A stretch of DNA of 64,000 bases, taken from NCBI RefSeq assembly GCF_002113885.1, contig NW_018408349.1:142945-206944 (forward strand), read 5' to 3'. The notes below the pieces were generated by a model. That model searched no databases and was not told the DNA's origin. It saw nothing but the letters and a program-made list of their open reading frames with translations. The position numbers and the translations under genes were made by a program. Positions 33,579 to 62,755 of this stretch are shown here, in pieces (within the stretch, counting starts at the first letter, position 1; every line of letters begins with the position of its first letter). Origin of the DNA: Mizuhopecten yessoensis (taxonomy: Eukaryota).

Positions 33579-33680
33579 CCAGTCCAGTCAACAGTTCTAA
33601 AAGTGAAGTGAGACAACAAGAAATACCAGATTTCGAGTTGAAATGGAGCAAGGAAGTAAGGTACATAAAATTGATATCTT
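33579..33680 (+). pseudogene. Diverged copy of the PPP1R15 large-exon 3' end (SPVNSSKSEVRQQEIPDFELKWSKE) with donor sites
   Basis: Ungapped by-eye alignment of 56/72 nt to the gene (SPTNGCESDKRQQEILDVNLKWS), followed by taag|gtacat as in the gene. In-frame TAG upstream at 33542. Confidence 0.7.
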
Positions 33681-33799
33681 AGTCTGGTTTACGTTATTTA
33701 CTTCCTTACCACATACAGTTATACTTATATCTCCACAAGACAGTAACATCGCCCTGCCCTTTATCTTCACTACCCGTTAAACCAGTCTTTTTGAACATA

Positions 33800-39700: not shown

Positions 39701-40140
39701 NNNNNNNNNNNNNNNNNNNNNNNNNNNNNNNNNNNNNNNNNNNNNNNNNNNNNNNNNNNNNNNNNNNNNNNNNNNNNNNNNNNNNNNNNNNNNNNNNNNN
39801 NNNNNNNNNNNNNNNNNNNNNNNNNNNNNNNNNNNNNNNNNNNNNNNNNNNNNNNNNNNNNNNNNNNNNNNNNNNNNNNNNNNNNNNNNNNNNNNNNNNN
39901 NNNNNNNNNNNNNNNNNNNNNNNNNNNNNNNNNNNNNNNNNNNNNNNNNNNNNNNNNNNNNNNNNNNNNNNNNNNNNNNNNNNNNNNNNNNNNNNNNNNN
40001 NNNCATTCACCACCATGTCCCCTTTGCTTTTCACTGTTTACCACCACGTCTCCTTTGCTTTTCACTGTTTACCACCACGTCCCCTTTGGTTTTCACTGTT
40101 AACCACCACGTCCCGTTTGCTTTTCACTGTTTACCACCAC
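33800..40140. repeat. Pyrimidine-rich ~32-bp satellite (tcaccaccacgtccccttccgtcttcctctat) with assembly gaps
   Basis: Direct tandem repetition; four N-gaps inside the array. Confidence 0.95.
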
Positions 40141-41090
40141 TAAATGTATGATTAGTTCTAGATACTGATTATTCTCAACTTCTTTAAGTATTAAGAAGGA
40201 TATTGACAAAGGCGACCATGAACTGAAAATCAAGGTCACTTAAGAATATTTTACATCATCAGCCGTTTATTTTTATCTAATATGCCATGAAGACAATTGC
40301 CAATATATAGTTGATATCACGATATCATTGTAAAATGTCTTATATCCTATTACGACATAAATATGGACTCTATATCATTTAAGTTTCAGTACTTTAGGTT
40401 TGATATCACTACCCCCATTCTCGCACTGAGGGCGTGACATTTTACATCGAAAGGTGATTATCCTTCTTGAACACCAGGGTCTGTATTCATGAAACTGTTA
40501 CCATGCTCAAGCTAAGATTCTGTGCTCAGACCCATTTTTTTGCTTTGGAGATAACGTAGTAAAAATTCGTATTTTTCTATACTCTGGGAGACTTTTGGAG
40601 AGAGATAAAGCTGTATACTGTTTTCAATGATTACGCATGGCATTTTTATCGTGTCACATTATTTGAGTAATAATGGTTTCATGAACGAGTGCCCTGGTCT
40701 TATTGTTCCATTGTCAACGGTATCTGTAAATCATTCGTTTGTTAACATTTTGGCCTAGTGTTATCTGCTTATTTCTGTTTAAGACTTCATTTAACCTTTC
40801 TTCTTGCTCTCCCTCCTTATACGCAATGGTTCCATTCTTGGTACTTTCCTTCAGAACTGCCTTGTAATGTTACGTATGGTCCTAAAATTCCCTCTGCTTT
40901 AAGCTTCTTTCAGACATCTCTGCCTGGTCCTCTATGTGTTTGTTTTTTTATCATTTCTTGAGTTCACATTTACTTTCTTGACAACACCGCAACACTGACG
41001 CCCGCCCCTCTCCTCGTCACTTACACCCGTTCTCGACTGCAGTCGTTGTTTCATGTTTGCCCTCTCTTTAGCTCCTTACAATAACCTATC

Positions 41091-41369
41091 TTTCTGGTGT
41101 CCTTTGATAGTGAGTCTGATGACTTTTCAGGAGACAGTGGTGATGATTTTTCAGATAGTGATGGAGTAGATGAGCTGGACTTTTTCTCCTGTCCATTACA
41201 ACTTAATGTGTTTTGTCCTGTGAAACAACCTATGGCTACCAACTCCCCTAAGGAACCCAGTCCAACCAACGGTTGTGAAAGTGACAAGAGACAACAGGAG
41301 ATACTGGATGTTAACTTGAAATGGAGCATGAACTTTTCTATAAGTCAACGGGAAAAATCCAAATCTAAG
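41091..41369 (+). pseudogene. PPP1R15: Inverted partial duplicate of PPP1R15, penultimate-exon 3' part (in-frame ATG at 41232); pseudogene or mini-gene
   Basis: 277/279 nt identical to 61168-60890 (revcomp); intact donor gtacgt at 41370; in-frame TAA at 41082. Confidence 0.85.
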
Positions 41370-42899
41370 GTACGTACACATGAAATTGATACCTCGTAAT
41401 GAATATGACAAAAGTTTATCTTTCCGATAGGTTTAATGTCCCCTCCGTTTAATCGGCTATGTATCTTTGGGCTGTAAAGTTCACAAATGTTGCCTGATAT
41501 ATCGAATTCGAAAAGATGCAGACGTGTACTTTTGACACACTTTAAAATAAATTACGTCAGTTGTCAAACACTTTTAGTAGCAGTGTTTGCACTGGTTATT
41601 GTCATCAATAAAGGGACTATTTCCAGCTATGTTAAAATTACATAAGAGCCTGCCCCCTCATAACTTTTGGTTCAGAAGTGCTTCGAGATTTATGCTGCTG
41701 TTTTAACTTTTTTTCAATCCCTTATACATCAGAGTTATTACTTTGAATCACTCTTCTAATTATTTAGATGATTAATTAACCTTATTACAGCATGAGTGTC
41801 GAAAAATGGAATATCAGCCTGAAAGTATTTTTCTGAAAAAAACCCATATTTTTTGCAACGTAATACTTGGGAAAGACATTTTCTTTCATGTAGTGCTTTA
41901 ATACATTTATCATCCAGAATGCGAGTTTAATCGAACATTTTGTGAACATTTTAATGTAAAATCTCATTATTCCTGTATACCAAACATTTTCATAGTATGA
42001 AGAAGTGGTGTTATTTTAAATATATATGCAAAACTTCAGTCCAAAAAAGTGGTGGAAAGTATTCATTTCGCACAACAAAGTACCCTGTGTACCCAAAAAG
42101 GTGAGGGCACAGACACCTCCCTGGCGTCCACCAAAAAAACAATGCACCTGATAACAGGTAATTAATGAAATTCGTTGCAAGTCTACAATAAACCTTTCAG
42201 TGCATGTTAGGTCACAAACAATTCCAAATTCCCATCTATTTCATCACTTGGCGCGATTGATAAAGGTTTTGTTAACAATTAATTTTGAAATAAAATGTAT
42301 TTTTTTGTCACTTTTTAGAATCTGTTCTTATACATTTTGTTATCATTTTTCATACATTTTATCATCAGACATTCGTTTTTACATTGCTTTTAGAGGATAT
42401 TTCATATTCATTTGTTAATATTCATCTCATAATGAAGAGTAAATGTATTGATGAAGGTCGCCATCGTATTTTCGCGAAATCTCGTAAATGTAAAGGTACA
42501 CGAAATGTAAAAACAAAATCCATAATATAAATGGCTTTTGGATATACTGACTAAAAGTGGCATAAATTGCTCAAATGAGTTAGTATTTGCGCAAAAGAGA
42601 ACCTGAAACAGAACGTTTTTAAGAAGAAACTGCTAGAAGTTTTTTTGTCTCGTAACAATCAAGGACCTGTTTTACGGGTCCTGTTCACATAAAAATGTTG
42701 TCTTTCTTTTAACGATTTGAATTCGAAGGGAAGCAAATCCACAAAAACGTGCCAGGCATCAGTTAATTTTCACACACAAATTGTGGTGTTATGCGTCATC
42801 ACGTGTATGTTCATTTCATCTTATTGGCAATGACCTAAACCCTTGCATACAGGTTATCCTATAAGGAAGAGAGTGTTTGAACTCTCAATTATGAAGTAG

Positions 42900-44100
42900 G
42901 TCATCTGAAATAATTGATGACCTTTTAGAAGTGTCGCACATTGTATCAAAGAATCAATCAGCCTTCACTCTCAATTTTTGTCTCTTGGATTACCCTGACT
43001 GCAAAGCTTGGACAGGTTGGTCAAAGTACAGTTTCTCAAAATCCATACGTAATGTGTCCCATTTCTTTCTTATTAAGGATATACCAAAACTACACAAAAT
43101 GCTCTTTTACCGTTTTGGGTTAAGATGAAAACTGATATCTCATGTAATTAAGTGTTCCGCTCTTTTTGGCATTTCCCGGCCTAATATTTCGAAGACCTTT
43201 CATTCTGTAGAACAAGCATTGAATAAATCTATAGTTCCAGTGTTCCCTGGTCCTGACCATTTGAGTAGGGGNTGTTCCTTGGTCCTGACCATTTGAGTAG
43301 GGAACATATACTTTCACAAATACTTTATTATCAGAAACATTCTTTGGAGACAAAGTGACTGCCTTAATAGATGGTACAAATATTTATATTACATCATAGA
43401 CAAGCTCACATGGTTGGAGCAAGACGACAATGTAGTCGTTGATCGTGGTTTTAGTAATATCCTGCCAACGTATGGGGCATCTGTTACTGATACCAGTATG
43501 TACTCATATCTTAAGACATGTCAGAGACAACACTCTGATCTACAGGATAACATTGACAGAACAGTTACCAAATCCCGATGGATTGTAGAGTCTTTTTATG
43601 GCCGTATTAAGCATTGGATAATTTTTAGAACTCAATATCAAATTGCTTCATTGATATAATTGAGGAAGTGCTAAAGATTGTGACTGCATGTCTCAATTGG
43701 ATACGGGGACCAATTTATCATAGACCACCGAAACTGACATAAAAGACAGAGAACTCGCACATCAAATAAAGTGTATACTCAACCAGCTCATTCCAAGAAA
43801 GCAAACTCAGAATTCGTAAAGATTATGAAATATGGGTGAATCGGCACTATCAGGGCTCCTATGTTGCCAGATTTGTTCCAGAAACAACAGCCAAACTAAA
43901 TACAATGTTTGGATTCAGTACAGCACGACACCAAATGATAATAATCTAATAAAAGATTACTACTGCCAATGCCCAGTTGGTCAAAGAACTATGGGAATGT
44001 ATGCTCCTACATCAAGTATACTTTATTATCTTGGCTATCATAGCAATCTTTAAAATCCAAAACAATTGCACCCAAGGGCTAAGAAGTTCCGACAAAGCTT
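42900..44100 (+). mobile_element. Degenerate DDE_Tnp_4-type (PIF/Harbinger-ISL2EU-like) transposase with C-terminal SWIM-like zinc finger
   Basis: ALIDGTNIYI (~43360), VVDRGF, RTVTKSRWIVESFYGRIKHW and YYCQCPVGQRTMG...SILYYLG; stops, frameshifts and an internal deletion. Confidence 0.75.
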
Positions 44101-44278
44101 GAAATAAGTTGTTTTCTTGAGAATCTAGAAAACAAACTCAAAGCCTCGCAACCTTTTTTTCTTCTTTCTTTTTTCCGAGTCTGCCATTCGAACACATACA
44201 TGTATCATACTCTTGCATCTTGGAAAAAATTATCTGTAAATGTCATCAGATGTTAATACGGCGTCTTACTTTAATAAA

Positions 44279-45230
44279 GAGGTATGGCGGAAAACTGCCC
44301 GTATTTCCATAAGTCGGCATTTATGAAAACGGAGAAAAAAATTAAGGAGTAAAACAATTCGTGTAGCCAAAATGCATACAAAAGATACAAAACCAATTGA
44401 ATATGATTTTTTAAACTGCTGAGAAATTATGTATTGCTAATATGATACTGCAAATATAGCCATATACACTATATCTATGAAAGTGATGGGGTTTCCCGGA
44501 CTTAAAAAAATACTTTCAACACTTTCCCATCCGAGGACCAACTTTTGAATAAACTTTTTGTGACCGTGATGTAATATGCAAAAACAAATCGTATTACGGA
44601 AAAGTGGTCCTCCTTTGGGAAAGTGCTCAATTAATGAAAAACAGGGGTGATCAAGTTTCTCTAAACTGCGACCAGTGTTTCTCGGGTTAAATCAGTTTGT
44701 AATTGCCAATATCGATATGTTCTATGTAGCCGAATGTGTAACGCAGTTTACTTGTGATTAGAAAATAAACGGTGCAGGTTCGAATCCTCCTTCAGTTATT
44801 TTTTATTTTAAATATTTAGGCATGTTATCATTTTCCTTAATAAGGCATTGGTGTTTTGCTTTTTTTAAATCGATGGAAGATTTTGTTTACATTTTAATGA
44901 CATACTTCTATCGAAGCATGTCAACAAATCCCTGTACACGTGTACAGTACAGCTACGCTTTGTAGGTAAGACACTATTTTTGATGAAATTTATGAATTGT
45001 TTTACCCTCCAACTGGCAATAGTAAGTATATCAAGTGCTTAAACACCAACAAATAATGCCGAATTACCAAATATGTGGTCTGTTTACAATAATCTATTCT
45101 TAGACACGGGATTCCGATATTGCTACCTGTATAAAAATACCTGAGGACGCGTCATAACAGTGCACGGTTGGATGCGCGCACTAGCGTACCATAGCTTTGG
45201 GGAAATAGGCATAGCAACCCGCCATATCTC
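44279..45230 (+). mobile_element. MITE copy A (GAG(G/C)TATGGCGG TIRs; AAA|element|TTT junction, Spy-like)
   Basis: Inverted termini; homologous in reverse orientation to 46831-47912. Confidence 0.75.
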
Positions 45231-46028
45231 TTTATAAAAACAAAGTAACAAACAAACATGCAATCTCTGAATTCCATTGATATTGCAAGAAAGTTGTCTG
45301 AGAATCTGACAACTGATAAGGCAGTAGAATGAATTTTGATGGCCATCTTGAAAAGGGATAAACCAACGATTTTTTTCCAAAAATGTTCTCCATTGATTAA
45401 ATTCTTCATTTCTGTCAGTTTTCAGTTATAACGATTAGACTACATGAATTCTGATGTATAGACCCTATGGTCATTTGATCCCTTCTTTGAATATGTTCCA
45501 CCACATATTTTGGATTGATATTTTTGTCACTGGTAGTTCATAATCTAGTCCTTTTATAATCAAAATATTTTTGGTATACAAAAGTTATAAGATACTTTTA
45601 GTCTAAGATGACCACACATTTTGTCTGGAAAATATCATTGCTTGAGATGGCTTCCGACTGTTGATTTGTTTGTAAATATCTGATAACTCACTATAGAGAT
45701 TTTTACATGTATACTGTAGCATATATTCCCTAGTTGTGGTTGCATCATAAATGATCCTTCAATGCATTATTAGTTTGACAACATTCGACTTTTGGGGGGA
45801 AACTCTTGACCTTTTGAGAATTTCAGTTTTATGCTCTTACGAAAAACGAAGTGCTCATTTGAAATTTGGTTGGTGTTTTTGTTGTGATAAGGTTTAGGTC
45901 TACACCTCACCAAAAGAAAATTGAAATCAAAGGAGGGGCCATTTTGGAACCCCTCACCCCCTTTCATCTCGCAAAAAAATATTTACGAAGACTTTTTTTA
46001 TATTTAAAATGACCTAAACATTTTGCAG

Positions 46029-46226
46029 GTGACTTTTGCTGAGGGAGACCAGTTGTGTACAGTATATGATTTGGATGATGAAGACCGGAAATCACACTGG
46101 GAGGAATGTGTCCGTGATAGGGAACGATTTCAACGCCGAATTACTGAAGTGGGGGAGATCATGAAGCCTGTGTTATCGATGGAGAGAAGAGATAGAATTT
46201 ATCACCAATATTTAAAACAGAACTGA
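46029..46226 (+). pseudogene. PPP1R15: Inverted duplicate of the PPP1R15 terminal coding exon (VTFAEG...RDRERFQRRI...QN*); pseudogene or mini-gene
   Basis: Identical to 60448-60251 (revcomp); intact ttgcag acceptor; identity continues into the 3' UTR to ~46280. Confidence 0.88.
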
Positions 46227-46830
46227 AGACAGACTACGATACAGATGATGACTAGAGACTGAGGTTATAATGTGATGGTTGATATATAAGTACATACATT
46301 TAGAGGCCATTGTATTTCTTGATTCAGGTTTACTGATGATTACTGTGTATCATTGGTAATAGTTAATAGACCGCAAGAGGCCCCAGGGACCTGAAGCCGA
46401 TCGTCTAATGTAGTATTTCTGTTTTTTACTCACTGCCAACACGCTTTTGGTCAAAGCTCGTTATTCCAAGTCTTTTTCCTTCTTCAGAGGAAGTCATTTG
46501 GGTATATATTTGTTAAGGTTGTTTCTTTCCGGAAAATGTTTAGCTATCTATTTCGGTAAGCTAGAGGCCAAATAGCATGACGATCCCTGTAATCTTTAAA
46601 GTGTCCAGCTTATTTTACCTTGAATGAATGTCAAAGTTATTTCTGTTCTCCAATTTTGTTGCACGCCATACTAACAACAAGCCAACCTACATGATTCTAG
46701 AAATCGGTTTCCCTGAAGGAGTCATTTTCACAACATCGACTGTGAATATGGGTTAAGGTCATTCCTTTTTGCAAACTTTGAAGCACTAGATGGCAAAATT
46801 AAACAGAATGTATTTGAGTATTTCGACAAA

Positions 46831-47912
46831 GAGCTATGGCGGATTGCTATGCCTATTTCCCCAAAGGTGAGACCACTAGTGCGAGCGTGCCACCGTGTAC
46901 TGTGATGACGCGTCCTCGGGTATTTTTATACAGGCAAACAGCCGAATTCAACGCCGTGGCTATTGGTGCATGCGTTTCACGATAAAGACTCAACAAAATG
47001 CTTATTTCGCGTTATTTCTATGAATTTGAAACAAATAATATGCTGTATGTAACAATCGTAGGATTTAATTATCATTACTGCTACCTGCGTCATGCCGTTA
47101 CCTGCATCTTACAAAAAAACACATCTTGATTTTGTTTTTTCTGCACATATGAATGGCAAAATGATATAAATAATTTTCGAATAGCATGACTCACACGTGT
47201 ATTGCGATTCTTACTTTGTGCTGCAGTCATCCTGCATTTCAAACAAATGAAACTATCCTCAACGATCAATTTTCCCGTATTTTTGGTAATATATTTGTGA
47301 TAATAACACTTCATATTGTTTGTTTGGCCTTCTTTTATTGTGACGCAACAATCCCACACAATCCATCATCATTTGTTTGTGTTTAAATAATAGATAAGAT
47401 TACAAGTGCCAATTAGAAGGAAAAATAATTCATAAATATCTTTTAAGATGATGTCTTATCTACAAAGCGTAGCTGTACTGTACACGTGTACAGTGATTTG
47501 TTGACATGATTCCATAGAAGATAAATCAATAGGTATGTAATTAAAATACAAATTAAATGTACTATTGATTTGAAAAATATTTTATTAATTAATTAAGGAA
47601 AAAGAATACGATTTTTTCTTTTGCATATTACATCACGGAATAAAAAAGCTTATTCAAAAGTTGGTCCTCGGATGGGAAAGTGTTCAAAGTATTTGTTTAA
47701 GTCTGGGAAACCCCATAATTTGGCATAGATGGATATGGCTATATTTGCAGTATCAAATTAACAATACCCTATATCTCAGCAGTTCAAATATTCATAACCA
47801 ATTAGTTTTATATCTATTCTATGCATTTTCGCTGCTAGAAATTATTTACTAATTAATAAAAAATTTCCGTTTTCATAAAAGCCGAAATATTGGCAGTTTT
47901 CCGCCATAGCTC
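46831..47912 (-). mobile_element. MITE copy B (same family, opposite orientation)
   Basis: GAGCTATGGCGG...CCGCCATAGCTC termini; shares internal blocks with copy A (e.g. ctgtacacgtgtacagtacagctacgctttgtag). Confidence 0.75.
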
Positions 47913-47938
47913 TTGACCATCTTAGTTTAGTTAACTCA

Positions 47939-49001
47939 CAAGCACAGAAATCAGTGTTTGCTGTCTATAAGAAATTGAGAAACATATCTTTACCAGTTGA
48001 TCTACAATTGAAGATATTTGATTCATTAATTATGCCAGTTCTTCTGTATTCATCAGAAATATGGGGTTTTGAAAACACAAATATTATAGAAAAAATCCAT
48101 CTTCAATTTTGTAAATATATACTAAATGTAAGAAAAAGTACACCAAATTTCATTGTTTATGGTGAGCTTGGAAGATACCCACTAGACATCGAAATTAAAT
48201 GTAGAATAATAGTATTCTGGCATAAGTTGATTACCTCTAGTAAGTTATCAAGTACTATTTATAAGCTTATGTATACATTACATGAAAATGGAACTATGTT
48301 ATTTAAATGGCTCGCATATGTTAAAGATATTTTTTCTCAAACTGGCCTGAACTATGTGTGGTACTATCAATCTACATGTTCTTTTTCAAAAGACGAAATT
48401 AAGAGGCTTGTGAAAAGTAGACTGAAGGATCAATTTATACAGAAATGGTTTGATAATATTCTTAACTCCTCTAGAGGACAAACATATTCAATATTAAAGA
48501 CAAAGTTTGAACAAGAAAAATATTTAATTAAACTTAATACAAATGATAGGAAAATAATGTGTAAATTCCGTTCTTGCAATATGCATTTACCCATAGAAAA
48601 AGGAAGATGGTTAGGTATTCCTCGTCAAGAAAGAACCTGTACATTATGTAATTTGTACATTGGAGATGAATTTCATTACTTATTTATATGTGAAAGTGTT
48701 TTAGTTAAATGTCTAAGAGAGAAATATATACCAAAATATTATTTCACTTATCCAAGTCAATTAAAAATGCAAGGATTGTTTAATATATTTAATGTAAAAA
48801 TTTACACAAAACTTTGTAAATTCATAGAAAAGCTTGAAAAAATATTAACTTAATTTCTGTACTATTTGTGTACTTCTATATGTATCTATGCTATGTACAA
48901 TGTTGTAATTGTGTACATCACACGCCATGTATCATACTTACTATATGTATGTGACCTCTTGTTACACACGTAAGTGTGTCGGAGTGAATAAATAAAACTT
49001 A
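47939..49001 (+). mobile_element. 5'-truncated non-LTR retrotransposon (RT C-terminus plus CCHC finger; ORF 47954-48853) inserted into a 90-bp MITE
   Basis: LKIFDSLIMPVLLYSSEIWG, VYGELGRYPL, LPIEKGRW...RTCTLCN..IGDEFHYLFIC; aataaa tail; aactca duplicated at both ends. Confidence 0.88.
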
Positions 49002-51847
49002 AACTCATTCACCACTGAAGACACATTTGAACTCTTCCAATTCAAATGCTGGAATAGTTCATTATGACATTTCAGGGATGAATGAGTTAATATCTTAGCT
49101 CCCGCCGTCATTTTGGAAAGAAGTATAAGAAAATTACAACAAAATTTGTATTGCACACGTAAAATTAAATTCTACAAAAAATATATTTTAATATAAAAGG
49201 CGACTAATGTACTAGGAATTGGAGTGTTAGGATATTGAAGAAATCAACATGTTTGCACTCCGCCCATCCGCCCATCCGTCCGAGAAGTTTGTCCGGGACA
49301 TATCTTCTATACTATTTCACATGGAGAAACCAGATTTGGTGTACAAGGACATCTTGGGATGGCGGAGTGCATGAAGAAGGTCACTATGACCTCACGGTGA
49401 CCTATACTTTGACCTTTGACCTTAACATTTGAAAAAGTTTGTCCGAGGCATATCTTCTATACTATTTCATCTGGAGTAACAAGATTTGGTGTACAATGAT
49501 ATCTTGGGATGGTGGAGTGCTGAGTCGAATAATTAGATCACTGTGACCTATTACTTGACCTTTACTTCTGAAAATGTTTGTCTGGGGCATATTTTTTTTT
49601 TTTTTTTTTTTTTACCGGACTATTTGTTTATTTTCTTCATCTGAATGGTATCGTAAAGTACTGATAAGAACGAAAATAAAAAAGTTGATTTACACAATTT
49701 GTTTATACTAGTGTTTGTCAATGCATGTATTCAAAAGAATCAAAGGTCTTACTCCAGAGTTGATGATTAAATTTTAACAGTGATATAGTGTACAATGTAT
49801 GTTAAAATACAATTAGGATAATGATAACATTACAGTCCATATTGAAGAGAGTCTGCCTTTTTTCTCGTTTTAAAAGACAAACAATATTCAAAGACACGAA
49901 AGTACAGAGGAATTGTAAAATCTTGGAAGAACAGGCGATATCCAATAATGACTACATTTATAAAAAAAAATGACCTAGGCCTTAATTTGGTGTTCTTCTT
50001 GAAACTACATGTTTTTATACTTGCATATGTCAGTTATAAGCAGAAATATCTGTTTATTGAATGCCGCATTTCCACAGTTTTTCATTCAACTATTCTGATG
50101 CCAATAGCGATCATATAACAAAAACATATATACACACAATTACTGTAAGAGAATATACTGCATATTTTTCTCTAAGATAATTTGGTAAGGTGAAGATGCA
50201 GATGGCACAGCAAAATGCGCCTTTAAAAAATAAATCATGTTCTTAAAAGTCAGGTAACGGAAAACTACATGACAATATTCCGAGATGAAAATTCAGAAGA
50301 AAAAAATCTCTTTGTTGAAAAATTCAGAAAGAAAATTTCTTTGTATTTGAACTTGTGTTAAAATGACTTCAGAAGAACTTTTTAAAAGTAACATAATAAA
50401 TGTAATACGTAAACTACATTAAAGATAGCCATTACGTGTCCATGTCTACAACGTATAGTTACAAATAAATAAATGTGGACTGAACTGCAGGAATAATAAC
50501 AAGAGGCCCAAGGGCCTTAGCGGTCACCCGAGTTATATCGAGAAAAATGAAAATATCTTCCAAAATTGTATGCAGGACAACGAAGGATTTCATCAGTAAC
50601 ATCGACTTGTAAAAAATGTAGAACTGTTTCTGGACATAAAAATCTGTCGGAGATACGACAAAACTACAAGGTATTCATTGAAAATATTAAATTAATTGTT
50701 TGTGCAAAAAAATAACATCAATGCAGGCACGGAGCAACGCATATTGCCGTTTTTTCGAGCCTGTACGACCGGAAGGACGAACGTTTTTGAAGCCTTCAAA
50801 TAGCATAGAACCAATTCAATCACATTTTCCCGTACTTTCCGTACATGTGTTGCCATAACGGCTTGAGCGATCGGCCGAGAGGGCCCGCTACTAATTTCTG
50901 GCAACAAAAATCTAGAACTTTTTTTTCTTCTAAGATTGGGACAACTATACTTTCAAAAACGGTTTGGTTAAAATGTAAAAAAAATGGTCACTTTTCAAAA
51001 TTAGTGTGTGTGTTTAGGTGGAAGGGGGGGGGGGGATCTTTTATGTAGATTCAGCTGGTAATGCTGCAATGTAAGTAATGCACATGGAGCAACCAGTTTG
51101 GGTGTCGAGGACATCTTGGGATGGCGCAGTCGAAGTCGTAGTCGTAGTGACCTATGACTTGACCTTTACTTCTGAAAATGTTTGCCTGGGGCATATCTTT
51201 TGTACTTTTTCATCTGGAGTATCCAGATTTGGTGTACAAAGACATCTTTAGATGGTGGAGTGCAGAGTTGAACTAGAATTTTGTTTTTGTGAACAAAAAC
51301 ATGTATTTCCCCTTATAAGCCAATAGGCAAACTTCAGTATAAAAAAATAACAAAGGGCCATATCTCTGTATATAGTGGGGCATGAGACCCGAATTTTGAA
51401 TGCGACACTCCTACCTCCCAAGATACATTAAACTAGGAAGTTTATTGACAAACTTCGGTATTAAAAATAAACAAAGGGCAATAACTCTGTATATAGTGGG
51501 GCACGAGACCTAGTTCCATTGCACTGCACACGTTCTGTGGGTGATGCAGGTAAACTTTAAGTTTGATTAAGATATCTTTTATGGTTTAGAAGTTATGCCG
51601 TGGCCAAACTTCGGTATTAAAAAAAACCAAAGGGCCATAACTCTGTATCAAGTGGGGCATAAAACCTGAATTCAGTGCGAGAAATTCCGCCATACCAAGA
51701 TACATAAATATGGTAAGGTTGGTCAACGTAGGTGAAATAACATGGAACTTATGATCCAGACAAACTTCGTTATTAAAATGAAACAAAGGGACATAACTCT
51801 GTATATATTGGGGCACGAGACCAGGTTCCATTGCAATGCACACCTTC

Positions 51848-54800
51848 GCCTGCGGAACTGGAAGGTCAAAAATTTAATTTTTCAGGCAAAAAGTAAATTG
51901 AAAGAATCCAGGCAAAACATTTTTATATCAGAGGACTTAACAGCTAATCGTCAGGCATTAATTAAAAGTCTAGGCAAGGCCAGAAAAGCAAAGAACATTT
52001 ACTCTTACTGGACAAACGACGGACGTGTCTTCTATAAAGTTGCACAGGACTCGCCCAAAATACTCGTCAAGACACACAATGACATATCGGACCTTGTACC
52101 AGAGGGCCATTGAGTGACTGTCATGTTTACACAGTAAACACAGCCAAAAATGACTTGACATTCTGTACATAATGTCAGTTCATTAAAATAGTTATACATA
52201 TATCATACAAAAAACCACCACCCAATCCATTTCCATCCATGGTTGGCATAATAAATATTACATGCATGCTACTAATGTATGTATTTAAATATGTATAAAT
52301 AGGTGCACGCGTGTGAGCATATTTTGTACGTGTGTTTATGTGTGGATTACATACATATAGAAGCCTGTGTATAACCATAAGTGTATGTGTACATACTCTG
52401 TGTATCTTCGGGTGAGATATTTAATTTCATTTAATTTCATATACATGCACGAGTATTTAAATACTATATATAATATATGTGAACGTTTACGTGTATGTAT
52501 AGCAAATTAAATAGTACATGCATGCTGCTTATGTATGTATGTATGTATGTATGTATGTATGTATGTATGTATGTATGCAAGCATGCTTGTATATATATAT
52601 ATATGTGTGTATATTCGTGTATGTCCATGTACTTACTCCTTACTGAAAGGCAAATCAGTTTTGAAAATAAATAACTTATACAGTGTATGTATAAATAGGT
52701 GTACGTGCATGTGTATTTGTAAAATGAATTATTTGTGTTTTTTCAAATTCATGCATGAGTCTTTCAATATTAGGGGTTGTAAATACGTTGTTATATATAC
52801 ATGTATGTGTGTGTTTCATGTTTGTTCTAGTTGATAAGTTGCATGCGAATAATGAACACATCGACACTGGTAATGTGAATATTGTACAATAATACATATC
52901 GTCATTGATAAATCCCATTTTTTTCGTATTTTTGTATTGCTAAAACCATGAAACCGCTGCTGAATCATCAGCCATGTTTACTCTTTAAATTCTTCTTTCT
53001 ACTACTTCCTGTCAACTTTCTCTCTGTTTACCCTATCTTGACCTTAGATCGACTACTTGGCACGTGCAGTCATTCATGCGTACATACAAAGAAGTTCTTT
53101 TCTTTGACAGGTGTTACATGTATATGTTTTCTTTAGACGCTCCCGGGGGGAATCCTGTGCAATATGTTGTTTTTGATAATGGTTAATCGGTGATATGTCA
53201 GCAATATCGCACAGGATTTCAATCGGTTGCTTTTATAATATAGCTTATGGAGGATCATGTTTTAAAAAAATACGTAGTGTAATACACATAAATACTGATT
53301 ATATATCGAATGAACACATATTTTACAAAACTCTTTTTATATCTAGTGTTAAAGCAAGCGTAGCATCTTTCATGTTGATGTGCTTACAGTCACAGTTTCA
53401 AAACATAAATTTTTGCCATATTTTGTTGTTATTACTTATATTGGACATGGATGTAGAAACTAATCCAGGTCCATCAGTAAATGAATTATCTCTATTTCAT
53501 TTGAATGTTAGAAGTATAAGGAATAAATTAGAATATATTGAAAATATTACAAATGAATTCAATATTTTATGTATGACTGAAACACATTTGGATGAGTATG
53601 TACCTACTTCTGAACTAGTTCTACCGGGTTTTGTGGAACCATTTAGAAAAGACAGAAATTTCTCCGGTGGTGGTATCTTAGTATATTATTCTGTTTCCTT
53701 AAAATGTGTCCGGAGGAATGATCTCGAATTTCTGGATGGAGAAATAATTTGGATACAGGTAGAATTAGGTCACAATAGTGTATTAATATGTACCGTTTAT
53801 AGACCAGAAAATTCACGTCACCCTTTTTGGGAGAATTTTAAGTATTCGATTGAAAAAGCTTTAGAAATTACTTCGAATGTTATTATTGTTGGTGATATAA
53901 ATGTAGATATGCTAACGTTATCACGTAATCATATTTTACACCAAGTCATGTTGGAAATGGACTTAACTAACGTTATTAATGAGCCGACTAGGCGTGGAAC
54001 AACCAGAAATAGTTTACTTGATCCTATTTTATTAACTGACCCTACCAAATGTACTGATTCGTATGTAATTCCGATTGATCGTAATATAAGTGATCATGAT
54101 GCATGTATTGCATTTTTGTCTATACCTGTTAATCTCTCTTGTACCTACACTCGAGAAATTTGGGCCTATAAACATGCCGATTTTAATAGGTTAAATTTTT
54201 TAATAGAAACTTTTGAGTGGCCTACATTTTTTCAAAACTTTATTTCCGTTAATGTAGCATGTGTTGAATTTACTGAACAATTTTTGAAACTTGCTAAAGA
54301 ATGTATACCCAAAAAAACAGTTTATATAAGACCTCGTGATAAATTATGGATGAATTCCCAATTAAGAAAAGCTTTTCAGTTACGAGACCGGTTACATAAC
54401 GCCGTTAAACGTGTTAAGTCCATATCCAACTTAGAGAAATTTAAAAGACAAAGAAATAAGGTTAATAATATGAAAAAATATGCAAGAGAAATGTTTTATA
54501 ATAGTGTTGGTGATATTATAGATAATCTTAATACCAGTAATCCTAAGTCATATTGGAGACTAGTGCGTAAATTATTAAAACAGTCGGGTTCTCAGGAGGT
54601 TATTCCACCTCTAGTTAATCCTTGCAATGCAAATATTGAATATGATGATGATAAGAAAGCAAATATTCTAAATAATTATTTTAGCTCTATCTCAAACATA
54701 GATGATATTGGCAAATCTTTACCCAGTTTTGATTCCAGAACTGATTCTGTACTTGATTCTATTGTGGTTGAAAGTGATGAAATATGTGATATTTTGAAAA

Positions 54801-56845
54801 TTCTGAAATTAGGAAAAGCATCTGGTCATGATACTATAAGTCATCATATGCTAAAATTTACAGCGAATTCTATATGTAAGCCATTGTCAATTCTTTTTAA
54901 TATGTCACTAAATTCTAAAATATTCCCTGAAATATGGAAACATGGTATTATTTTACCACTGTTCAAAAAGGGTGATAGACACTTGGTGTCAAATTACCGA
55001 CCAATTACTTTGTTGTCTTGTATAGGTAAGGTTTTTGAAAGGGTTGTATTTAAACACATCTATAATTTTTTCCTTGATCATTCTTTATTTTACGAAAAAC
55101 AATCTGGTTTTATGATTCATCATTCCACTGTCCATCAGCTAATAGAAATTTACCATAATATATGTTGTTCATTAGAAGAAAAAAAACATACTTGTCTAAT
55201 TTTTTGTGATATATCGAAGGCTTTTGACCGAGTTTGGCATAGGGGTCTTTTACATAAATTACATGCTTATGGTATTAGAGATGGTTTACTACATTGGTTT
55301 AAAAATTACATTTCAAACAGACAACAACAGGTTCTTGTTAAAGGTGTGTATTCTAATATAGGTTACACAAATGCTGGTGTACCACAAGGAAGTGTGTTAG
55401 GTCCTCTGTTATTTTTGGTTTATATTAATGATATTGTTGATAATTTAAATTGTATTTCACGCTTATTTGCTGATGATACCTCTTTGATGTATTCTTCGTC
55501 TTCTCATGCTGATATTGAAATGTGTGTAAACAGAGATTTGGAAAAACTTGACAAATGGTCACGGGACTGGCTTACTAAATTTAATCAACAGAAAACTGAT
55601 GTGTTATTTATATCTAATTCGCGAAATATACTTCCTTTACAGATTTGTTTTGGTACTGAGACTCTGAATTGTGTTGAAAGTCATAAACATTTAGGCGTAA
55701 TATTTAGTGCAGATGCAAAATGGTCTTTACATATTTCCGAAATTCAAAAAACATGCATGAAAAAGGTATCAGTACTACGAAAGTTTAAATTACTGTTGAG
55801 TAGGAAAACTTTGTTAAGAATATATAAAGTATTTGTGTTGCCTGTGTTGGAATATGCCTGTGAAGTTTGGGACGGTTGTTCTCTGGCAGATCTAACTAAA
55901 CTTGAACAAGTTCAGCTTGAAGCAGCAAGAATTATTACTGGCCTACCCTCTTTTTCTAGTAAACAATCACTTTATCAAGAATCCCAACTTGAACCTCTAT
56001 CTGAAAGAAGAAAACTTAAGAAACTTTCCCTAATGTACAAACTCCATAATAAACAAACACCTTCTTATTTAACTAACATTCTTCCTCCTAAAGTATGCGA
56101 ACGCAATAGCTACAACTTGAGAAATACTGAAAACTACACTGTTCCCAATTTCCGTCTGTCTAGTTCATTCCAATCCTTTATTCCTTCTTCTATAAGACTA
56201 TGGAACGATTTACCAAATACTGTCAGAGAGCAGCCATCCGTTAACATTTTTAAATCATCGATTAAGCGTAACCAAGGTTACTTGTTGCCTATTTTTTTTC
56301 ATGTAGGAAATCGAAAACTAAATATTTTACATACACGATTGCGTCATTCATGTAGTAGTTTAAATTATGATTTGTATAGAGTTAATATTGTAGGTGATCC
56401 AATGTGTGCATGTGGAAATGAGTGTGAAAATGCAGTCCATTACTTTTTTGATTGTATGCTGTATATCAGACAAAGACAAATTTTGATTGATGATATCTCA
56501 CGTTATTGTAATATTTCTCTAAATGTTATTATGTACGGTTCTCCAAATTTGTCAGATGAAGACAATGAAAATATCTTCCATATAGTCCAAACCTACATTA
56601 AAAATAGTAACAGATTTTAAGGTCAGTAGTATTATCCTATCATCTCTCTTTCTTATTCTTCTAAATTTCTTTTCTTCCCTTTTCCCTTCCTTTCTTCTTT
56701 GTTCATATATATTATAAATATATTTGTTGTTGTTGTCATGTAATCAATATAATGAAATGTATGGGAGAGGGCGTTTCTAAGTTGAGATAACTTGTGCCTA
56801 ATCCTTTTTGTTGAATGACAAATAAAAAATGTTTAAATAAATCGA
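51848..56845 (+). mobile_element. Recently inserted CR1/L2-group LINE, 5'-truncated in ORF1, with intact ORF2
   Basis: 8-bp target-site duplication ACACCTTC (51840-51847, 56846-56853); ORF1 C-terminus NIFISEDLT...WTNDGRVF (to 52113); A-rich tail. Confidence 0.92.
53195..56620 (+). CDS. LINE ORF2: 2A-like peptide, apurinic endonuclease, reverse transcriptase and C-terminal CCHC
   Basis: DVETNPGP; HLNVRS, ETHL, GDIN, SDH (APE); YRPITLL, QSGF, DISKAFDRVWH, GVPQGSVLGP, LFADD (RT); CACG..ENAVHYFFDC. Confidence 0.95.
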   Translation: MSAISHRISIGCFYNIAYGGSCFKKIRSVIHINTDYISNEHIFYKTLFISSVKASVASFMLMCLQSQFQNINFCHILLLLLILDMDVETNPGPSVNELSLFHLNVRSIRNKLEYIENITNEFNILCMTETHLDEYVPTSELVLPGFVEPFRKDRNFSGGGILVYYSVSLKCVRRNDLEFLDGEIIWIQVELGHNSVLICTVYRPENSRHPFWENFKYSIEKALEITSNVIIVGDINVDMLTLSRNHILHQVMLEMDLTNVINEPTRRGTTRNSLLDPILLTDPTKCTDSYVIPIDRNISDHDACIAFLSIPVNLSCTYTREIWAYKHADFNRLNFLIETFEWPTFFQNFISVNVACVEFTEQFLKLAKECIPKKTVYIRPRDKLWMNSQLRKAFQLRDRLHNAVKRVKSISNLEKFKRQRNKVNNMKKYAREMFYNSVGDIIDNLNTSNPKSYWRLVRKLLKQSGSQEVIPPLVNPCNANIEYDDDKKANILNNYFSSISNIDDIGKSLPSFDSRTDSVLDSIVVESDEICDILKILKLGKASGHDTISHHMLKFTANSICKPLSILFNMSLNSKIFPEIWKHGIILPLFKKGDRHLVSNYRPITLLSCIGKVFERVVFKHIYNFFLDHSLFYEKQSGFMIHHSTVHQLIEIYHNICCSLEEKKHTCLIFCDISKAFDRVWHRGLLHKLHAYGIRDGLLHWFKNYISNRQQQVLVKGVYSNIGYTNAGVPQGSVLGPLLFLVYINDIVDNLNCISRLFADDTSLMYSSSSHADIEMCVNRDLEKLDKWSRDWLTKFNQQKTDVLFISNSRNILPLQICFGTETLNCVESHKHLGVIFSADAKWSLHISEIQKTCMKKVSVLRKFKLLLSRKTLLRIYKVFVLPVLEYACEVWDGCSLADLTKLEQVQLEAARIITGLPSFSSKQSLYQESQLEPLSERRKLKKLSLMYKLHNKQTPSYLTNILPPKVCERNSYNLRNTENYTVPNFRLSSSFQSFIPSSIRLWNDLPNTVREQPSVNIFKSSIKRNQGYLLPIFFHVGNRKLNILHTRLRHSCSSLNYDLYRVNIVGDPMCACGNECENAVHYFFDCMLYIRQRQILIDDISRYCNISLNVIMYGSPNLSDEDNENIFHIVQTYIKNSNRF

Positions 56846-58739
56846 ACACCTTCTGTGGGTGATGCAAGTATACTTCAAGTTTGATTAAGATATCATTAAC
56901 AGTTTAAAATTCACTGGCCGCACAAGACTTACTGAAATTGTTGCACTTATTTGACATTGAAGTGAAGGTCACAGTGACCCAATTCCAGTGCACTGCACAC
57001 CTTCTGTGTACCTTAAGTTTCAAAGTTATGGCCTCGACAAGTTGCGATTAGAAGAACCAGTACTAATACAATGTCTCCCTTCATTCGAAGGAGAGACATA
57101 ATAATTAGGTCACTGTGACCTATGACTTGACCTTTACTTCTGAAAATGTTTGTCCAGGGCATATCTTCTATACTATTTCATCTGGAGTAACCAGATTTGG
57201 TGTACAAGGACATATTGGGGTGGTAAAGTGCAAGAAGAAGGTCACTACGACCTCACTGTGATCTATGATTCCTGACATAAGTGTACTGTTTGTTTATTAT
57301 AGAAATCATTACCGGTGGGGGACTATGGATTGCCTTGTTATTTGACATTTAACTTTGCATTATCCTGAATTTGAAAAAAACAACACATTTGGACATCACG
57401 ATGAAAGGGTATGTAGAAAACAATACACTGACGACACACCAATATTTAATGTAATCCAAATTTTCTCCTCACTATGTTTTTCTTAATTCTTTAGGTTTGA
57501 TGCTTTCATGATATGAATAAATGTCTTGATAGTAACACTATTTAAGTGTGATTTCATTTTTGCAAACTTTGTAGCTCTCCATGCAAGCATGCTACTGCCC
57601 AAATATCATCAACTCAAGCTTTCTCATTCTTCAGAAACAGATGTGTCAAGTTTTTGTAAGGTAAAGGTACCACTGCATCTATTATTATCAGAGTTCCATC
57701 ACTTTATTACACACAGTAGTCTCCCTTCTGTAAAGATATCATGAAGCAGCAAAAAAGACTTTTTCTGGTTAAGAGTAATTGCCCTATAACTTATAGATTC
57801 CCTTTACTTTCAGATACATATATGTCACAAGGTGTTGCAGAGCGCCCCGTATTGGCCCTGTTTATGAAGTAACAACCCCACATCCAGTTTGTTAGATACT
57901 TGAAATGTTAAAAATGTTATCCCTTTTTGGCCCTTAAAAAGGCTAGCCCCTTATCCTTTGCAAATGTCATTCCCCGTCACCTAGAAATATTTCCCACAAA
58001 ATTTTGGCTTAAGTCTGTCGAGTTATCAAGAGAAACTTGTTTGAAACAGCTTATAGAGAGTGCCAAGCTAAGTTAAATGTCTCAAAAATTATTTCACATG
58101 AATGATAGGATGATTATACATCTGTAATATAGGTACCTGTCACCAGACATGTTCCAACTGACAACAACAAAAATAAGTTAATGAATTCAAATCTTTTATT
58201 TAATTAAAAAATATCATTATTTGTTGAATAACCAGTACACAAAGCAAAAGGAAAATTTGAGGCATAACAAACAAGTTTTTGCAGGCATAAATTAAATGAT
58301 TTAAAATTGCAGGTTATAATCAACTGAAACACGAAAAACAAGTCTAAATTTAATTCTTTTATTAGAAATGTGTATCACAGCTTCATGATGCAATCAAAAT
58401 TAATAATAAACGACTACCCATTACATGGACTTTAACAAACTGAATATGGTGTAATCCAGATGTTTCAATATACCATATATTTCTGAAAAAAGAGCAATTC
58501 TTTTCTTGAAATGCAGAACATCCGAAGTAAATTTACTATGTAGTCCACTGATTTACAACGGTCCCTGTAGCAGGAGCACTATCACATATTTACTGTCAGT
58601 ACATGTACATACATATCTATTTCAAGTGTCTGCCACTAATTTGGTGCCATTTCAAAATGCATCAATGCAAGGTCAGCTTAAGGAATTTGAGATGTATGCG
58701 ATATTGGTTGACACTCTTGACCCGATGTTAAACAATTTT

Positions 58740-59190
58740 AACAAGAGGCCCAAGGGCCTTAGCGGTCACCTGAGTTTTATCATAGGTACTGGTAGCTTTA
58801 TTTTATTGTTTAGATGTGATGTGGAAATCAGCATGTAAACTAAGTGAAATACAATACTTGTCATGTCATCAAAGGATAAGAATTTGAAAATATTGGTAAA
58901 TGTTCCCTTTGGGGACCCGCCCTAGCTCCTGGGGAAGGGGCAGGAATCCCAATTTAACAATGTAACACCCTCATTCACCAAAGATGATTTTGACTAAGTT
59001 TGAGTAATTTTCTGCTGAAAATGGATAAAAATACCCAAAAGTGTTATTTCCCTATATAAACTATAGTAAACTTTAACCCCCTCCCCAAGGGAGAACGCAT
59101 AGCTCGGAGGTCCTGAAATTTACAATTTAAATAAAGCCCCTGATGATCTTTCCATCCATCACTTGAGCAAAGCTCAGGTGACCTAAAAAT
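58740..59190 (-). mobile_element. Complete short HINE/Helentron-like element
   Basis: aacaagaggcccaagggccttagcggtcacctgag at one end and ctcaggtgacctaaaaa at the other (subterminal inverted repeat plus stem-loop). Confidence 0.7.
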
Positions 59191-60250
59191 ACATCACATG
59201 CAGCCTATGGGAAAGTGATTCTGTGAAAGTTTTTCATTAATTTGAACAAATATTATAATAAGAGGATGTTTTCTCTCTTTAACCCTTACACCACTGTAAA
59301 CCATAATGGACACATCCAGAGTAATGAATGGTAGAGTCTACTAAAGTTACATAGGGATGAAAGAGTTAACCCATCAACTGTTGTGGCAGCCATTTGTTTT
59401 CATTTTAGAAGGCACTTGTCTATCAGGATAAGGATTTAATGACTCAACCATGCTTCTAACAACATACCCCATTACAGAAAGTCTCAATACGTATTTGCAA
59501 GATAATGTTGAAATGTCAGATATCTGTAGCTAGTACCAGTGTACATTGTTTTTAATACAGTTTACACAGATTACTCACCACAATACACACCGATACATTA
59601 ACTCTGATATTGCCCATAATTAATAGGATGAGCTCTAACCTAAAGGAGTGCGTGACAGATAAGAAAATTACTTTGAGTTGGGTTTTGTACATATGGAGAC
59701 TGATCCATCGATTACTTTAATTTCTCAATTAATGTGATGTTAAATCATTAGATTTCTTTACGACACATGCTAAGTGGACTAATTAGAATAATATCTGTAA
59801 TTATATATTTGGTTATCAGACATAATATTACTGACAGGTAGTTCTTCATCTTACAATGCTTTTGGTTGGGACTAGCAAGAGAAACGCAAACTTACCATTT
59901 TACTTCCCTTTCTATTATAATTAATAATTTAGATCTTAATTCAATGTACAAGCGCGACCTGCATACCACACTTCCATCAAAGTGAAGATATATTTTAAGC
60001 ACAAGTTAATGTGTACTTACTTTAAAAGTTAATTTGACCTCTTAGCAAAACAGTAATCATGACAAATCAAGAAATGAACCATTATCGTAAAATTGAATAA
60101 TTTAAAATAAAACAAACGAGTATCAACATGAACCTTGAAACAAGAAATAAAATATTTTGGCCAGGTGCCTCTAAGTGTATGTACTGATATTAATATAACC
60201 ATCACATTATAACCTCAGTCTCTAGTCATCATCTGTATCGTAGTCTGTCT

Positions 60251-60448
60251 TCAGTTCTGTTTTAAATATTGGTGATAAATTCTATCTCTTCTCTCCATCG
60301 ATAACACAGGCTTCATGATCTCCCCCACTTCAGTAATTCGGCGTTGAAATCGTTCCCTATCACGGACACATTCCTCCCAGTGTGATTTCCGGTCTTCATC
60401 ATCCAAATCATATACTGTACACAACTGGTCTCCCTCAGCAAAAGTCAC
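60251..60448 (-). CDS. PPP1R15: PPP1R15 (GADD34/CReP-like) terminal coding exon: PP1- and eIF2alpha-binding domain
   Basis: Splices as K|VTF (RVxF motif), followed by R..HWEE..RDRERFQRRI.E....KPVL, the GADD34/ICP34.5 homology domain; acceptor ttgcag. Confidence 0.92.
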   Translation of the reverse strand: MTFAEGDQLCTVYDLDDEDRKSHWEECVRDRERFQRRITEVGEIMKPVLSMERRDRIYHQYLKQN

Positions 60449-60889
60449 CTGCAAGTCAAAAAAAGAACCAATAAAATAGTGTAAAATTTAATGCTTTTGT
60501 AGACATAATAAACATAATGTACAAACTGTTTTTGTTGGTAGGTAGAAATCATTTTTGAAAAATCATTTTAACCAGCTTGATGAAGTCGACCATTTTTGGT
60601 TTAGGTTATAGTAATTAATGTTTGCACCAATATAAGTATTATTTTAACAGCAGCCAAAATGGAAATTTTTACTGCAGCAAGATTTAATTTAAACTAATTG
60701 TCACTGCAGCAATATTTATTTCAAACTATGTCAATCAGCTTACTTGCCTATTCTTACGCTTGATATATGATTGTTCTGTAAAAATTAAAATTTGCGAAAC
60801 TTTCCATGAAATTCCCACTATTTCATATCTAACATCCTTGATCAGCAAAAGATTAACTCGTGTCTGATACCTCATTTTAATGTATGTAC

Positions 60890-62755
60890 CTTAGATTTGG
60901 ATTTTTTCCGTTGACTTATAGAAAAGTTCATGCTCCATTTCAAGTTAACATCCAGTATCTCCTGTTGTCTCTTGTCACTTTCACAACCGTTGGTTGGACT
61001 GGGTTCCTTAGGGGAGTTGGTAGCCATAGGTTGTTTCACAGGACAAAACACATTAAGTTGTAATGGACAGGAGAAAAAGTCCAGCTCATCTACTCCATCA
61101 CTATCTGAAAAATCATCACCACTGTCTTCTGAAAAGTCATCAGACTCACTATCAAAGGACACCAGAAAGGAATGCTGTTGTAATGGACTGACAGGTGAGC
61201 TGTTGGAATTTATGCCAAGTAGAAATGCCACCGTATTGGCAGACCCTGAGTTTTTAGTTGTACCTGATCTCGCAGATGAACCCTTTTCTTTACATTTTTT
61301 TTCCTGTGATCGAGTTTTCTGTTCATTGTTTTTTGCTTGGCAGCTGGGGATTTCGGATAGATCTTCTTTTCTAGCCTTGGAACGCCTTCGCTTCTTTGCT
61401 GATGGACGGCATCCCTTTTTATGACTATTTCTAACTAATAGCACAATTCTTCTTGCATAGTCTTTATCTAAATCGGAAGGCTCACTTTTCTTCTCTGCAC
61501 AATTAGAACTTTGTGGTGACTCTGTATTAGACACTCCAACAGGGATTTTACGATGATCATCTTTTGAGCAAGACTGATGTTCATTTGGCTGAATTTCTGA
61601 TGATGTTCCATTGTCTTTATTTGTAGGTATTAAATCATTTTCCTCAAACATACAGGTCACATGAATCACATTGTCATCTGGTTGGAATATGTCACTTATA
61701 ACGGATGCTTCTCGTTGCAAAGTTTTGTTGTTAATTGACGAATCATTGGATGTTTCTGAGTCTATAGACACTGTCCTCACTCTGAAACCAATTCGCTGAG
61801 GAACGTCTGACCCCCCAATTTCTTCTGACTGATCACATTCAAACCAATCAATAATTTGGACAGATGCTGATTTGTGTCCATTGCTGCCTGCGTCAAGTTC
61901 TTTGCCTTTGGTGGCAGGGACTGTAGATATATCAGGCTTTTCCACTTTAAGTTGCAAGTCTTCACATGACTTTTTCTGACTTGGCATTGCACATTCAATG
62001 TTTATCACAGGCTTGGGAGTTTTATCATTGTCAATGACATTTTTGGAATGCGACAAAGTTTCACTAGTACTATCACTTCTTCTGAGAGGCTCTGTTGTAC
62101 TTTCCAACCTGTCTTGAATGATTAATTTATCATCTTGCAAAATGTTTTCTTGAGTGGGTTTTCTCCAGTTAGAACAATCACTTGGAACTCGGTCAGACGT
62201 GAATGAATATCTAGGTCGACGGCTGTACCTGTGTCCATCCACATGTTGTCCTCTATGAGAAGCCCTATTTGGGTACCTCTGTCCAAGATGGTGACCTGTC
62301 ACTGCTGGGTGGAATCCAGTTTTCTGATGCTGGAAATGCTTGAATTCTGGGGTACAAATGTTTGTAGAGTTTTTCAAATTTGAAAAGGCACAACTATTAG
62401 GCCGGGTTGGTGTTTTCTTGCGACAGCCCCAATGTGGGGCAGAGTATGGTGAGCTATGTGAATTCATAGCTTGTGTTTGGTTAAACTCATTCAATACAAA
62501 ATCACTTTCCATATTCATGGGCATAACGTTCGGTGCACTACTATAATTAATAAAACCTCTTTTAGTCCCATGTAATTTCATAAAAGCAGAGTCAAATAGG
62601 GTAGCCATGTCTGGTATGTATCTATCAGTTGAACAGCTGCCTGATGTAATTTCACCAGTACTGTCTAAACGCAAAAAAACTGGAGTTACGTGACCTTTTT
62701 CAGGTACGGGGTGTTTTTTGTCCTTACACCGCCATTTTGTCCCATATGGATTCAT
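60890..62755 (-). CDS. PPP1R15: PPP1R15 large coding exon (622 codons; full protein ~687 aa)
   Basis: Long Ser/acidic low-complexity ORF ending KSKSK|gtacat, in phase 0 with the terminal exon. Exact start codon uncertain. Confidence 0.85.

Follow-up and report, generated by a model that had tools for sequence, protein, structure and literature searches.

The 64,000-nt stretch of DNA analysed here (the window), which matches scaffold NEDP02005022.1 of the Mizuhopecten yessoensis assembly GCA_002113885.2 base for base, holds a PPP1R15-like gene on its reverse strand and, downstream of it in inverted, tail-to-tail orientation, a short truncated copy of that gene on the forward strand. The exons of this short paralog are nearly identical to the corresponding parts of the gene, while the introns of the two are not homologous. 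We consider it probable that the short paralog is an ancient tail-to-tail sister of PPP1R15 that has been homogenised by ordinary DNA-level gene conversion between nearby inverted paralogs. The pair is a new instance of a well-known process and involves no new mechanism; what it offers is a clean case of concerted evolution in a mollusc that is dated by comparison between species.

The copy on the forward strand was compared with the gene on the reverse strand by BLASTN and by direct comparison, and the similarity was found to be concentrated in two blocks, tract 1 and tract 2 (coordinates of all features are given in Table 1). Tract 1 contains 3 mismatches in 289 nt. In its exonic part, 41091–41369, an earlier note on this DNA had counted two differences in 279 nt, both A to G and both non-synonymous, and the direct comparison agrees: the first, at 41131, turns GAA of the gene into GGA of the copy (E to G) and the second, at 41352, turns AAA into GAA (K to E). 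The third mismatch, at 41374, is again A in the gene and G in the copy and occupies position +5 of the intron. A signature of A-to-I editing was considered, as all three differences have G in the copy and A in the gene, but polarisation by alignments with other species places two of them in the copy, as A to G, and the third in the gene, as G to A; the direction is not consistent, and this candidate was rejected. Tract 2, which comprises 6 nt of the acceptor, 198 nt of coding sequence (CDS) including the stop codon and the first 54 nt of the 3' untranslated region (UTR), is free of mismatches; the identity reported previously for 46024–46280, silent sites and about 54 nt of UTR included, holds at 258 of the 258 positions from 46023 to 46280.

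The introns that separate the two blocks are of very different length, 4659 nt in the copy vs 441 nt in the gene, exactly as had been noted before. An intron identity as high as that of the exons was looked for by sensitive local and anchored alignments, and the interiors of the two introns showed no similarity above shuffled controls. The earlier conclusion that the pair is not the product of a recent duplication is upheld by this result: had the copy arisen in Mizuhopecten by a young independent duplication, its intron should match that of the gene at ~99%, and such an origin is excluded.

It had also been stated that the identity breaks down within a few nucleotides of the splice sites. This is true of the donor and the acceptor, where the tracts reach 6–9 nt into the intron, but not of the 5' edge of tract 1 (41090/61169), which lies inside the 1866-nt coding exon of the parent, whose open reading frame (ORF) extends 1.6 kb further upstream. 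In the copy the same edge precedes, by 21 nt, the acceptor that the RefSeq model places between 41110 and 41111, and an in-frame TAA is found four codons upstream of the edge. Diverged homology is present just outside three of the four tract edges. It spans ~25 nt 5' of tract 1 (SSLQ-stop-PIFLV vs SPLQQHSFLV; shuffle test 14/500), ~25–60 nt of the intron start after the donor (anchored shuffle test not significant) and ~65 nt of the UTR after position 46280 (anchored shuffle test 2/500 at L = 90). The recognisable but diverged homology claimed earlier for the intron start and the distal UTR is short, and at best marginally significant.

The inverted pair in four scallop genera

The orthologous loci of Pecten maximus, Ylistrum balloti and Argopecten irradians were compared with the window, and an inverted tail-to-tail partial copy was found downstream of the gene in each of them, at a distance of 3.4–4.1 kb. 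In Pecten, the gene and the copy are 97% identical over the exon tail and 127 nt of the intron, 92% over the rest of the intron and 92–95% over exon 2. The corresponding values in Ylistrum are 78% for exon 2 and 82% over a 78-nt remnant of exon 1, and in Argopecten the identity of 68–75% is restricted to exon 2, the exon-1 tail of the copy having been searched for and not found. One ancient inverted pair can be observed here in four states: 68–75%, 78–82%, 92–97% with the intron included, and 99–100% in the exons only.

The paralog is older than the split of the four genera because it has the same relative place and the same orientation in all of them. Between genera the synonymous divergence (dS) of exon 2 is 1.06–1.88, which is saturated, vs a gene–copy dS of 0 in Mizuhopecten and 0.148 in Pecten. 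The proposal of the earlier note that an old inverted paralog is being homogenised by gene conversion agrees well with a copy carried by four genera, with dS above 1 between them and 0 within Mizuhopecten. Orthology of the copy flanks between genera was sought at the sequence level and only the exons, the end of the 3'UTR and a relic (see below) could be matched, since neutral DNA is saturated at this distance.

In the maximum-likelihood (ML) tree the gene and the copy are paired within Mizuhopecten (99% ultrafast bootstrap support) and within Pecten (96%). This is the within-species clustering of exons that had been predicted for concerted evolution, and the monophyly of the four genes, when imposed as a constraint, costs 96.5 units of log-likelihood and is rejected by the approximately unbiased test (p = 2.4e-5). 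Two extra outgroup contigs were considered as further genes and rejected, being unspliced or genomic versions of the single gene of the outgroup. The gene and the copy of Mizuhopecten have, moreover, a 1-nt deletion in common, and their C-terminus comprises 65 codons vs 69–75 in the other genes; this shared deletion is one derived change that spread to both genes, whichever the direction. For annotators the pair carries a caution, as the within-species identity is in this case uninformative on the age of the duplicate.

Trees alone cannot tell conversion from independent duplication, and the exon pieces might have been copied independently and recently, either by transposon capture or by young duplications that arose separately in each genus. 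The position of tract 2 between inverted-repeat arms of ~1 kb and the presence of a Harbinger-like transposase fragment in the intron of the copy would fit such an origin. It would, however, require that one and the same segment was duplicated in inverted form four times independently, each time to the same side and in the same orientation and order, which is implausible. Under transposon capture, two separate insertions would be needed, both in the correct order and orientation and both ending at the splice sites. The diverged homology also extends past the tract edges, and exon 2 of the Argopecten and Ylistrum copies is old and under coding constraint. In view of these data we regard independent copying as very unlikely.

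Several observations weigh against the homogenisation of an ancient paralog. A copy clade uniting the Argopecten and Ylistrum copies is not recovered in the ML tree, and the single origin of the copy rests on position, orientation and structure rather than on the tree. The homology outside the tracts appears short, and its significance in the shuffle tests is marginal. No transcript evidence was obtained for the short paralog, and no short homologs or transcripts of the copy were found annotated in the other three scallop genomes (representatives clustered at 50%). Finally, the figure of 99–100% comes from a single gapped assembly of M. yessoensis without independent read-level support.

The last of these points would have its full weight if the identity were an artefact of assembly or gap closing, the copy being real but with exons more diverged than they appear, which parent reads or collapsed repeat contigs had built or polished. 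The scaffold is gapped, with N runs within 34027–40003 and one N each at 27985 and 43272, the latter inside the intron of the copy, and the perfect identity of tract 2 over 258 nt could be read in the same way. The assembly is presumably based on short reads, and scallop genomes are highly heterozygous, which encourages the collapsing of bubbles. Tract 1, however, holds three locus-specific differences, which indicates that the two loci were resolved separately, and the edges of the blocks fall at biological landmarks (acceptor, donor) and not at Ns. A like pattern, at 92–97%, is seen in the P. maximus assembly, which is gap-free (no N) at this locus, and k-mer collapse could only have lifted a pair already ~97–99% identical to 100%. 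We consider an artefact unlikely.

Template and extent of the proposed conversion

Under the reading that we prefer, homogenisation of an ancient inverted paralog, the history of the pair would start with an inverted duplication that ran from the end of exon 1 through the intron and exon 2 into the start of the 3'UTR and produced an ancient truncated paralog. In the Mizuhopecten lineage the intron of the copy would then have been rebuilt by transposon insertions, with homology left in two exons only (exons B and C of the short paralog). These two islands would recently have been overwritten by non-reciprocal DNA-level conversion between loci 14–20 kb apart, and we infer that the conversion took place through break repair with the inverted paralog as a template. 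It would have proceeded as two exon-sized tracts because homology survives in the two exons only. The tract edges would be located at or near the exon edges since the intron of the copy offers no homology for extension of the heteroduplex, and the 3' edge of tract 2 would be an ordinary tract end within the still homologous UTR. The pair in this way illustrates how conversion is broken up into exon-sized tracts once the introns cease to be homologous.

The possibility of an mRNA or complementary DNA (cDNA) template, which the earlier note had left open, fared less well. In this scheme the reverse-transcribed spliced mRNA of the parent would serve as the repair template, and the exons alone would be copied. 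The identity is indeed essentially limited to exonic sequence, and an intact second ORF (ORF2) of a long interspersed nuclear element (LINE) in the spacer between the genes makes reverse transcriptase activity plausible. A tract spanning the junction would, however, delete the 4659-nt intron, which is retained, and the identity covers 9 nt (with one mismatch) and 6 nt of the intron at the two junctions. Tract 2 ends 54 nt into a UTR of ~2 kb, where a cDNA would go on. In Pecten the intron has been homogenised along with the exons (92–97%), and because the homogenised segment of Pecten runs through the intron, the template is taken to be genomic DNA. A cDNA template seems to us highly improbable.

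The copy does not have the make-up of a processed retrocopy either: the 4659-nt intron is present, and the homology ends ~54–120 nt past the stop codon with no A-run. Processed retrocopies and RNA-mediated conversion likewise give exon-limited similarity, but unlike them the scallop copy keeps an intron together with the splice-adjacent intron bases, lacks a poly(A) tract and has only short UTR homology.

Inverted duplicates that lie close together are well known to undergo gene conversion in a mosaic pattern, and the examples include the Hsp70 and alpha-amylase pairs of Drosophila, the tail-to-tail Dlx pair of Capitella and the palindromes of Y chromosomes (PMC3199776). The scallop pair resembles these systems in its inverted linkage and in being far more alike within a species than its age would lead one to expect, and also in the mosaic of tracts in the most conserved parts while the flanks and introns escape. 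In contrast to them, one of the scallop partners is truncated and possesses its own first exon, and the tracts are two in number, discrete, ~260–290 nt long and match the exon limits. A further difference is that the state of the scallop pair varies from 68% to 100% over four genera, which amounts to a natural time series.

Coding constraint on the short paralog

The earlier note spoke of a duplicate. The element is a homologous copy, and it is more than that, being annotated as a three-exon gene with a first exon of its own. GenBank has it as OWF43722.1, 'Protein DP71L', of 111 aa (join 41232..41369, 46029..46226), and RefSeq as XP_021367213.1, 'PPP1R15B-like', of 185 aa, for which mapping of the protein to the window by tblastn gives three exons, A, B and C. 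Exon A is without PPP1R15 homology, and no homologs of it were found within the 10-kb flanks of the loci of the other species. The acceptor of exon B, TTTGATAG, consists of nucleotides that belong to the coding sequence of the parent. The PP1-docking motif KVTF straddles the exon junction in both the gene and the copy, with K before the junction and VTF after it.

The 627-aa ORF at 62755–60872 on the reverse strand is 100% identical to the annotated parent protein of 687 aa (accessions in Table 1). With the gathering cut-off of the Pfam family PP1c_bdg (PF10488) at 26.1 bits, the parent protein scores 36.2 bits, its exon 2 being above the cut-off, and the short protein of M. yessoensis scores 41.7 bits. 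Exon 2 of the copy (exon C in Mizuhopecten) reaches 44.9 bits in Pecten, 33.1 in Ylistrum and 43.3 in Argopecten. In four of the four genera this exon has an AG acceptor directly before V-T-F and an uninterrupted ORF, the K upstream of VTF being confirmed in Mizuhopecten and Pecten only. The gene–copy dN/dS ratio (non-synonymous to synonymous) is 0.08–0.15. When a gene-majority proxy is taken as the reference, 27 of 47 differences in the Argopecten copy and 18 of 34 in the Ylistrum copy fall on third codon positions, and simulations of neutral change give a lower amino-acid identity than that of these copies (p < 0.0003 and p = 0.003). The acceptor, the intact ORF, the PF10488 match, the third-position bias and the simulation p values together argue for exon 2 of the copy being a coding exon and not a decaying pseudogene or an RNA-pairing arm.

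These results bear on the suggestion, also made in the earlier note, that the exons are kept identical by selection for base pairing. A hairpin in a read-through transcript would in that case give rise to small RNAs that regulate PPP1R15. The inverted convergent layout is suitable for this, and in Mizuhopecten the identity is near-perfect at silent and UTR sites too. The conserved poly(A) signal of the parent, however, is located ~12 kb before the copy, and each gene's own sense transcript carries the same, and not a complementary, sequence. A search of Rfam over the whole window gave no matches. The arms of Argopecten and Ylistrum share only 68–82% identity, yet the reading frame and the protein are conserved, so that it is coding, not pairing, that has been maintained. 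We regard base pairing as extremely unlikely to be the explanation.

The function of the C-terminal core of PPP1R15 is established knowledge. The short paralog keeps only the PP1-docking KVTF and this C-terminal PP1c_bdg core, and we infer that its product may act, in the manner of DP71L, as a PP1 cofactor in the dephosphorylation of eIF2alpha. The PF10488 core is shared with DP71L of African swine fever virus, ICP34.5 of herpes simplex virus 1 and PPP1R15A/B (GADD34/CReP). The same is true of the KVTF (RVxF-type) docking motif, which PPP1R15A/B and the viral homologs possess likewise and which in the scallop straddles the exon junction. Like the minimal viral proteins, the predicted scallop product (111–185 aa) retains the C-terminal core alone. 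Unlike viral DP71L and ICP34.5, it belongs to a host gene and has an N-terminal exon A without detectable relatives, its function being predicted.

One may go further and suppose that the short paralog is a functional host 'minimal PPP1R15' (DP71L-like) kept for more than 100 million years, and that conversion was favoured since it matches the PP1- and eIF2alpha-binding surfaces or spreads adaptive change. The 1-nt C-terminal deletion shared by the gene and the copy would then be an example of such spread. We find this extension unlikely. A conserved truncated PPP1R15 paralog in scallops may be of importance to the way in which bivalves control the integrated stress response; no work on scallop PPP1R15 or DP71L was found in the literature searched, and the truncated paralog is undiscussed there.

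Other features of the window

Table 1. Features of the gene pair and its surroundings (positions in the window; strand left empty where none is assigned)
Feature	Position	Strand	Remarks
Tract 1 (probable conversion)	41090..41378	+	Corresponds to 61169-60881 (-): last 279 nt of parent exon 1 and 9 nt of intron
Tract 2 (probable conversion)	46023..46280	+	Corresponds to 60454-60197 (-); 0 mismatches/258 nt
Older 3'UTR homology, apparently unconverted	46281..46345	+	Indel-rich, much lower identity; abuts tract 2
Exon A of short paralog	31180..31280	+	tblastn of XP_021367213.1; 33 codons + 2 nt; donor AT/GT at 31280/31281
Exon B of short paralog	41111-41369	+	Within tract 1; mapped RefSeq protein
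Intron 2 of short paralog	41370..46028	+	4659 nt; not homologous to the 441-nt parent intron
Exon C of short paralog	46029-46226	+	Including stop; within tract 2; Pfam PP1c_bdg
Parent PPP1R15-like CDS	60251..62755	-	LOC110459329; XP_021367206.1 / OWF43723.1, 687 aa
Parent exon 1 CDS	62755..60890	-	1866 nt
Parent intron	60889..60449	-	441 nt
Parent exon 2 CDS	60448..60251	-	Including stop
Conserved end of parent 3'UTR	58183..58325	-	AATAAA poly(A) signal at 58200-58195
Spacer between convergent genes	46346..58182		~14 kb stop to stop
Relic third copy of exon-1 tail and donor	33579..33652	+	In intron 1 of short paralog, upstream of satellite
Satellite, 32-bp unit, >6 kb	33796-40140	+	C/T strand bias, GC skew -0.78; four N gaps
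Harbinger-like transposase fragment, decayed (PIF/Harbinger)	43414-43659	+	DDE_Tnp_4 E = 2.4e-4, below Pfam cut-off; within the 4659-nt intron
Inverted-repeat arms, ~1 kb	44314-45240 and 46821-47885		80-89% complementary; flank exon C/tract 2; left arm inside the 4659-nt intron
LINE 3' fragment	47954-48853	+	In spacer
123-aa ORF	51742-52113	+	Weak Baculo_FP_2nd match; in spacer
Non-LTR (long terminal repeat) retrotransposon ORF2, intact, 1141 aa	53195-56620	+	Endonuclease and reverse transcriptase; RVT_1 E = 2.9e-33, Exo_endo_phos E = 4.7e-9

The spacer between the two genes has been inflated by non-LTR retrotransposons to ~14 kb, vs 3.4–4.1 kb in the other genera. The conserved end of the parent 3'UTR is the sole intergenic stretch that matches the sequences downstream of the Pecten, Ylistrum and Argopecten genes, the rest of the UTR being diverged. 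The ~1-kb inverted-repeat arms may have arisen from two old insertions of a single repeat family, or they may together form a foldback-type element.

Intron 1 of the short paralog contains the relic third copy of the exon-1 tail, which is 77.8% identical to the gene and to the copy and has a 39-nt deletion; judged by its alignment, it would be an example of an unconverted copy. The idea that this deletion is common to the Mizuhopecten relic and the Ylistrum copy was not supported by the alignment. The 32-bp satellite is situated in the same intron, ~0.95 kb upstream of tract 1. In P. maximus a 41-bp satellite occupies the equivalent place (17831–20178 of its locus), ~0.9 kb upstream of the copy; the two repeat units are loosely alike by eye and gave no BLAST match. 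Self-comparison of the window revealed three more tandem-repeat arrays, at 13932–14987, 15582–17110 and 22680–24346, with units of ~34–40, 66–67 and 41 bp, respectively, the first of them lying in a region of strong GC skew.

Two further features of the Pecten locus were recorded. The gene of P. maximus has a run of four A residues where its copy has five (11790–11800 vs 16835–16825 of the locus), and this causes a frameshift in exon 1, the RefSeq protein being truncated at 605 aa and lacking PP1c_bdg; the difference may be a homopolymer error of long reads or a real lesion. The intron of the Pecten copy contains an insert of ~510 nt (16442–15935 of the locus, reverse strand), at whose start the acceptor and the initial ~25 nt of exon 2 are found in duplicate (GTGACCTTTGCAGATGACGAAAAC...).

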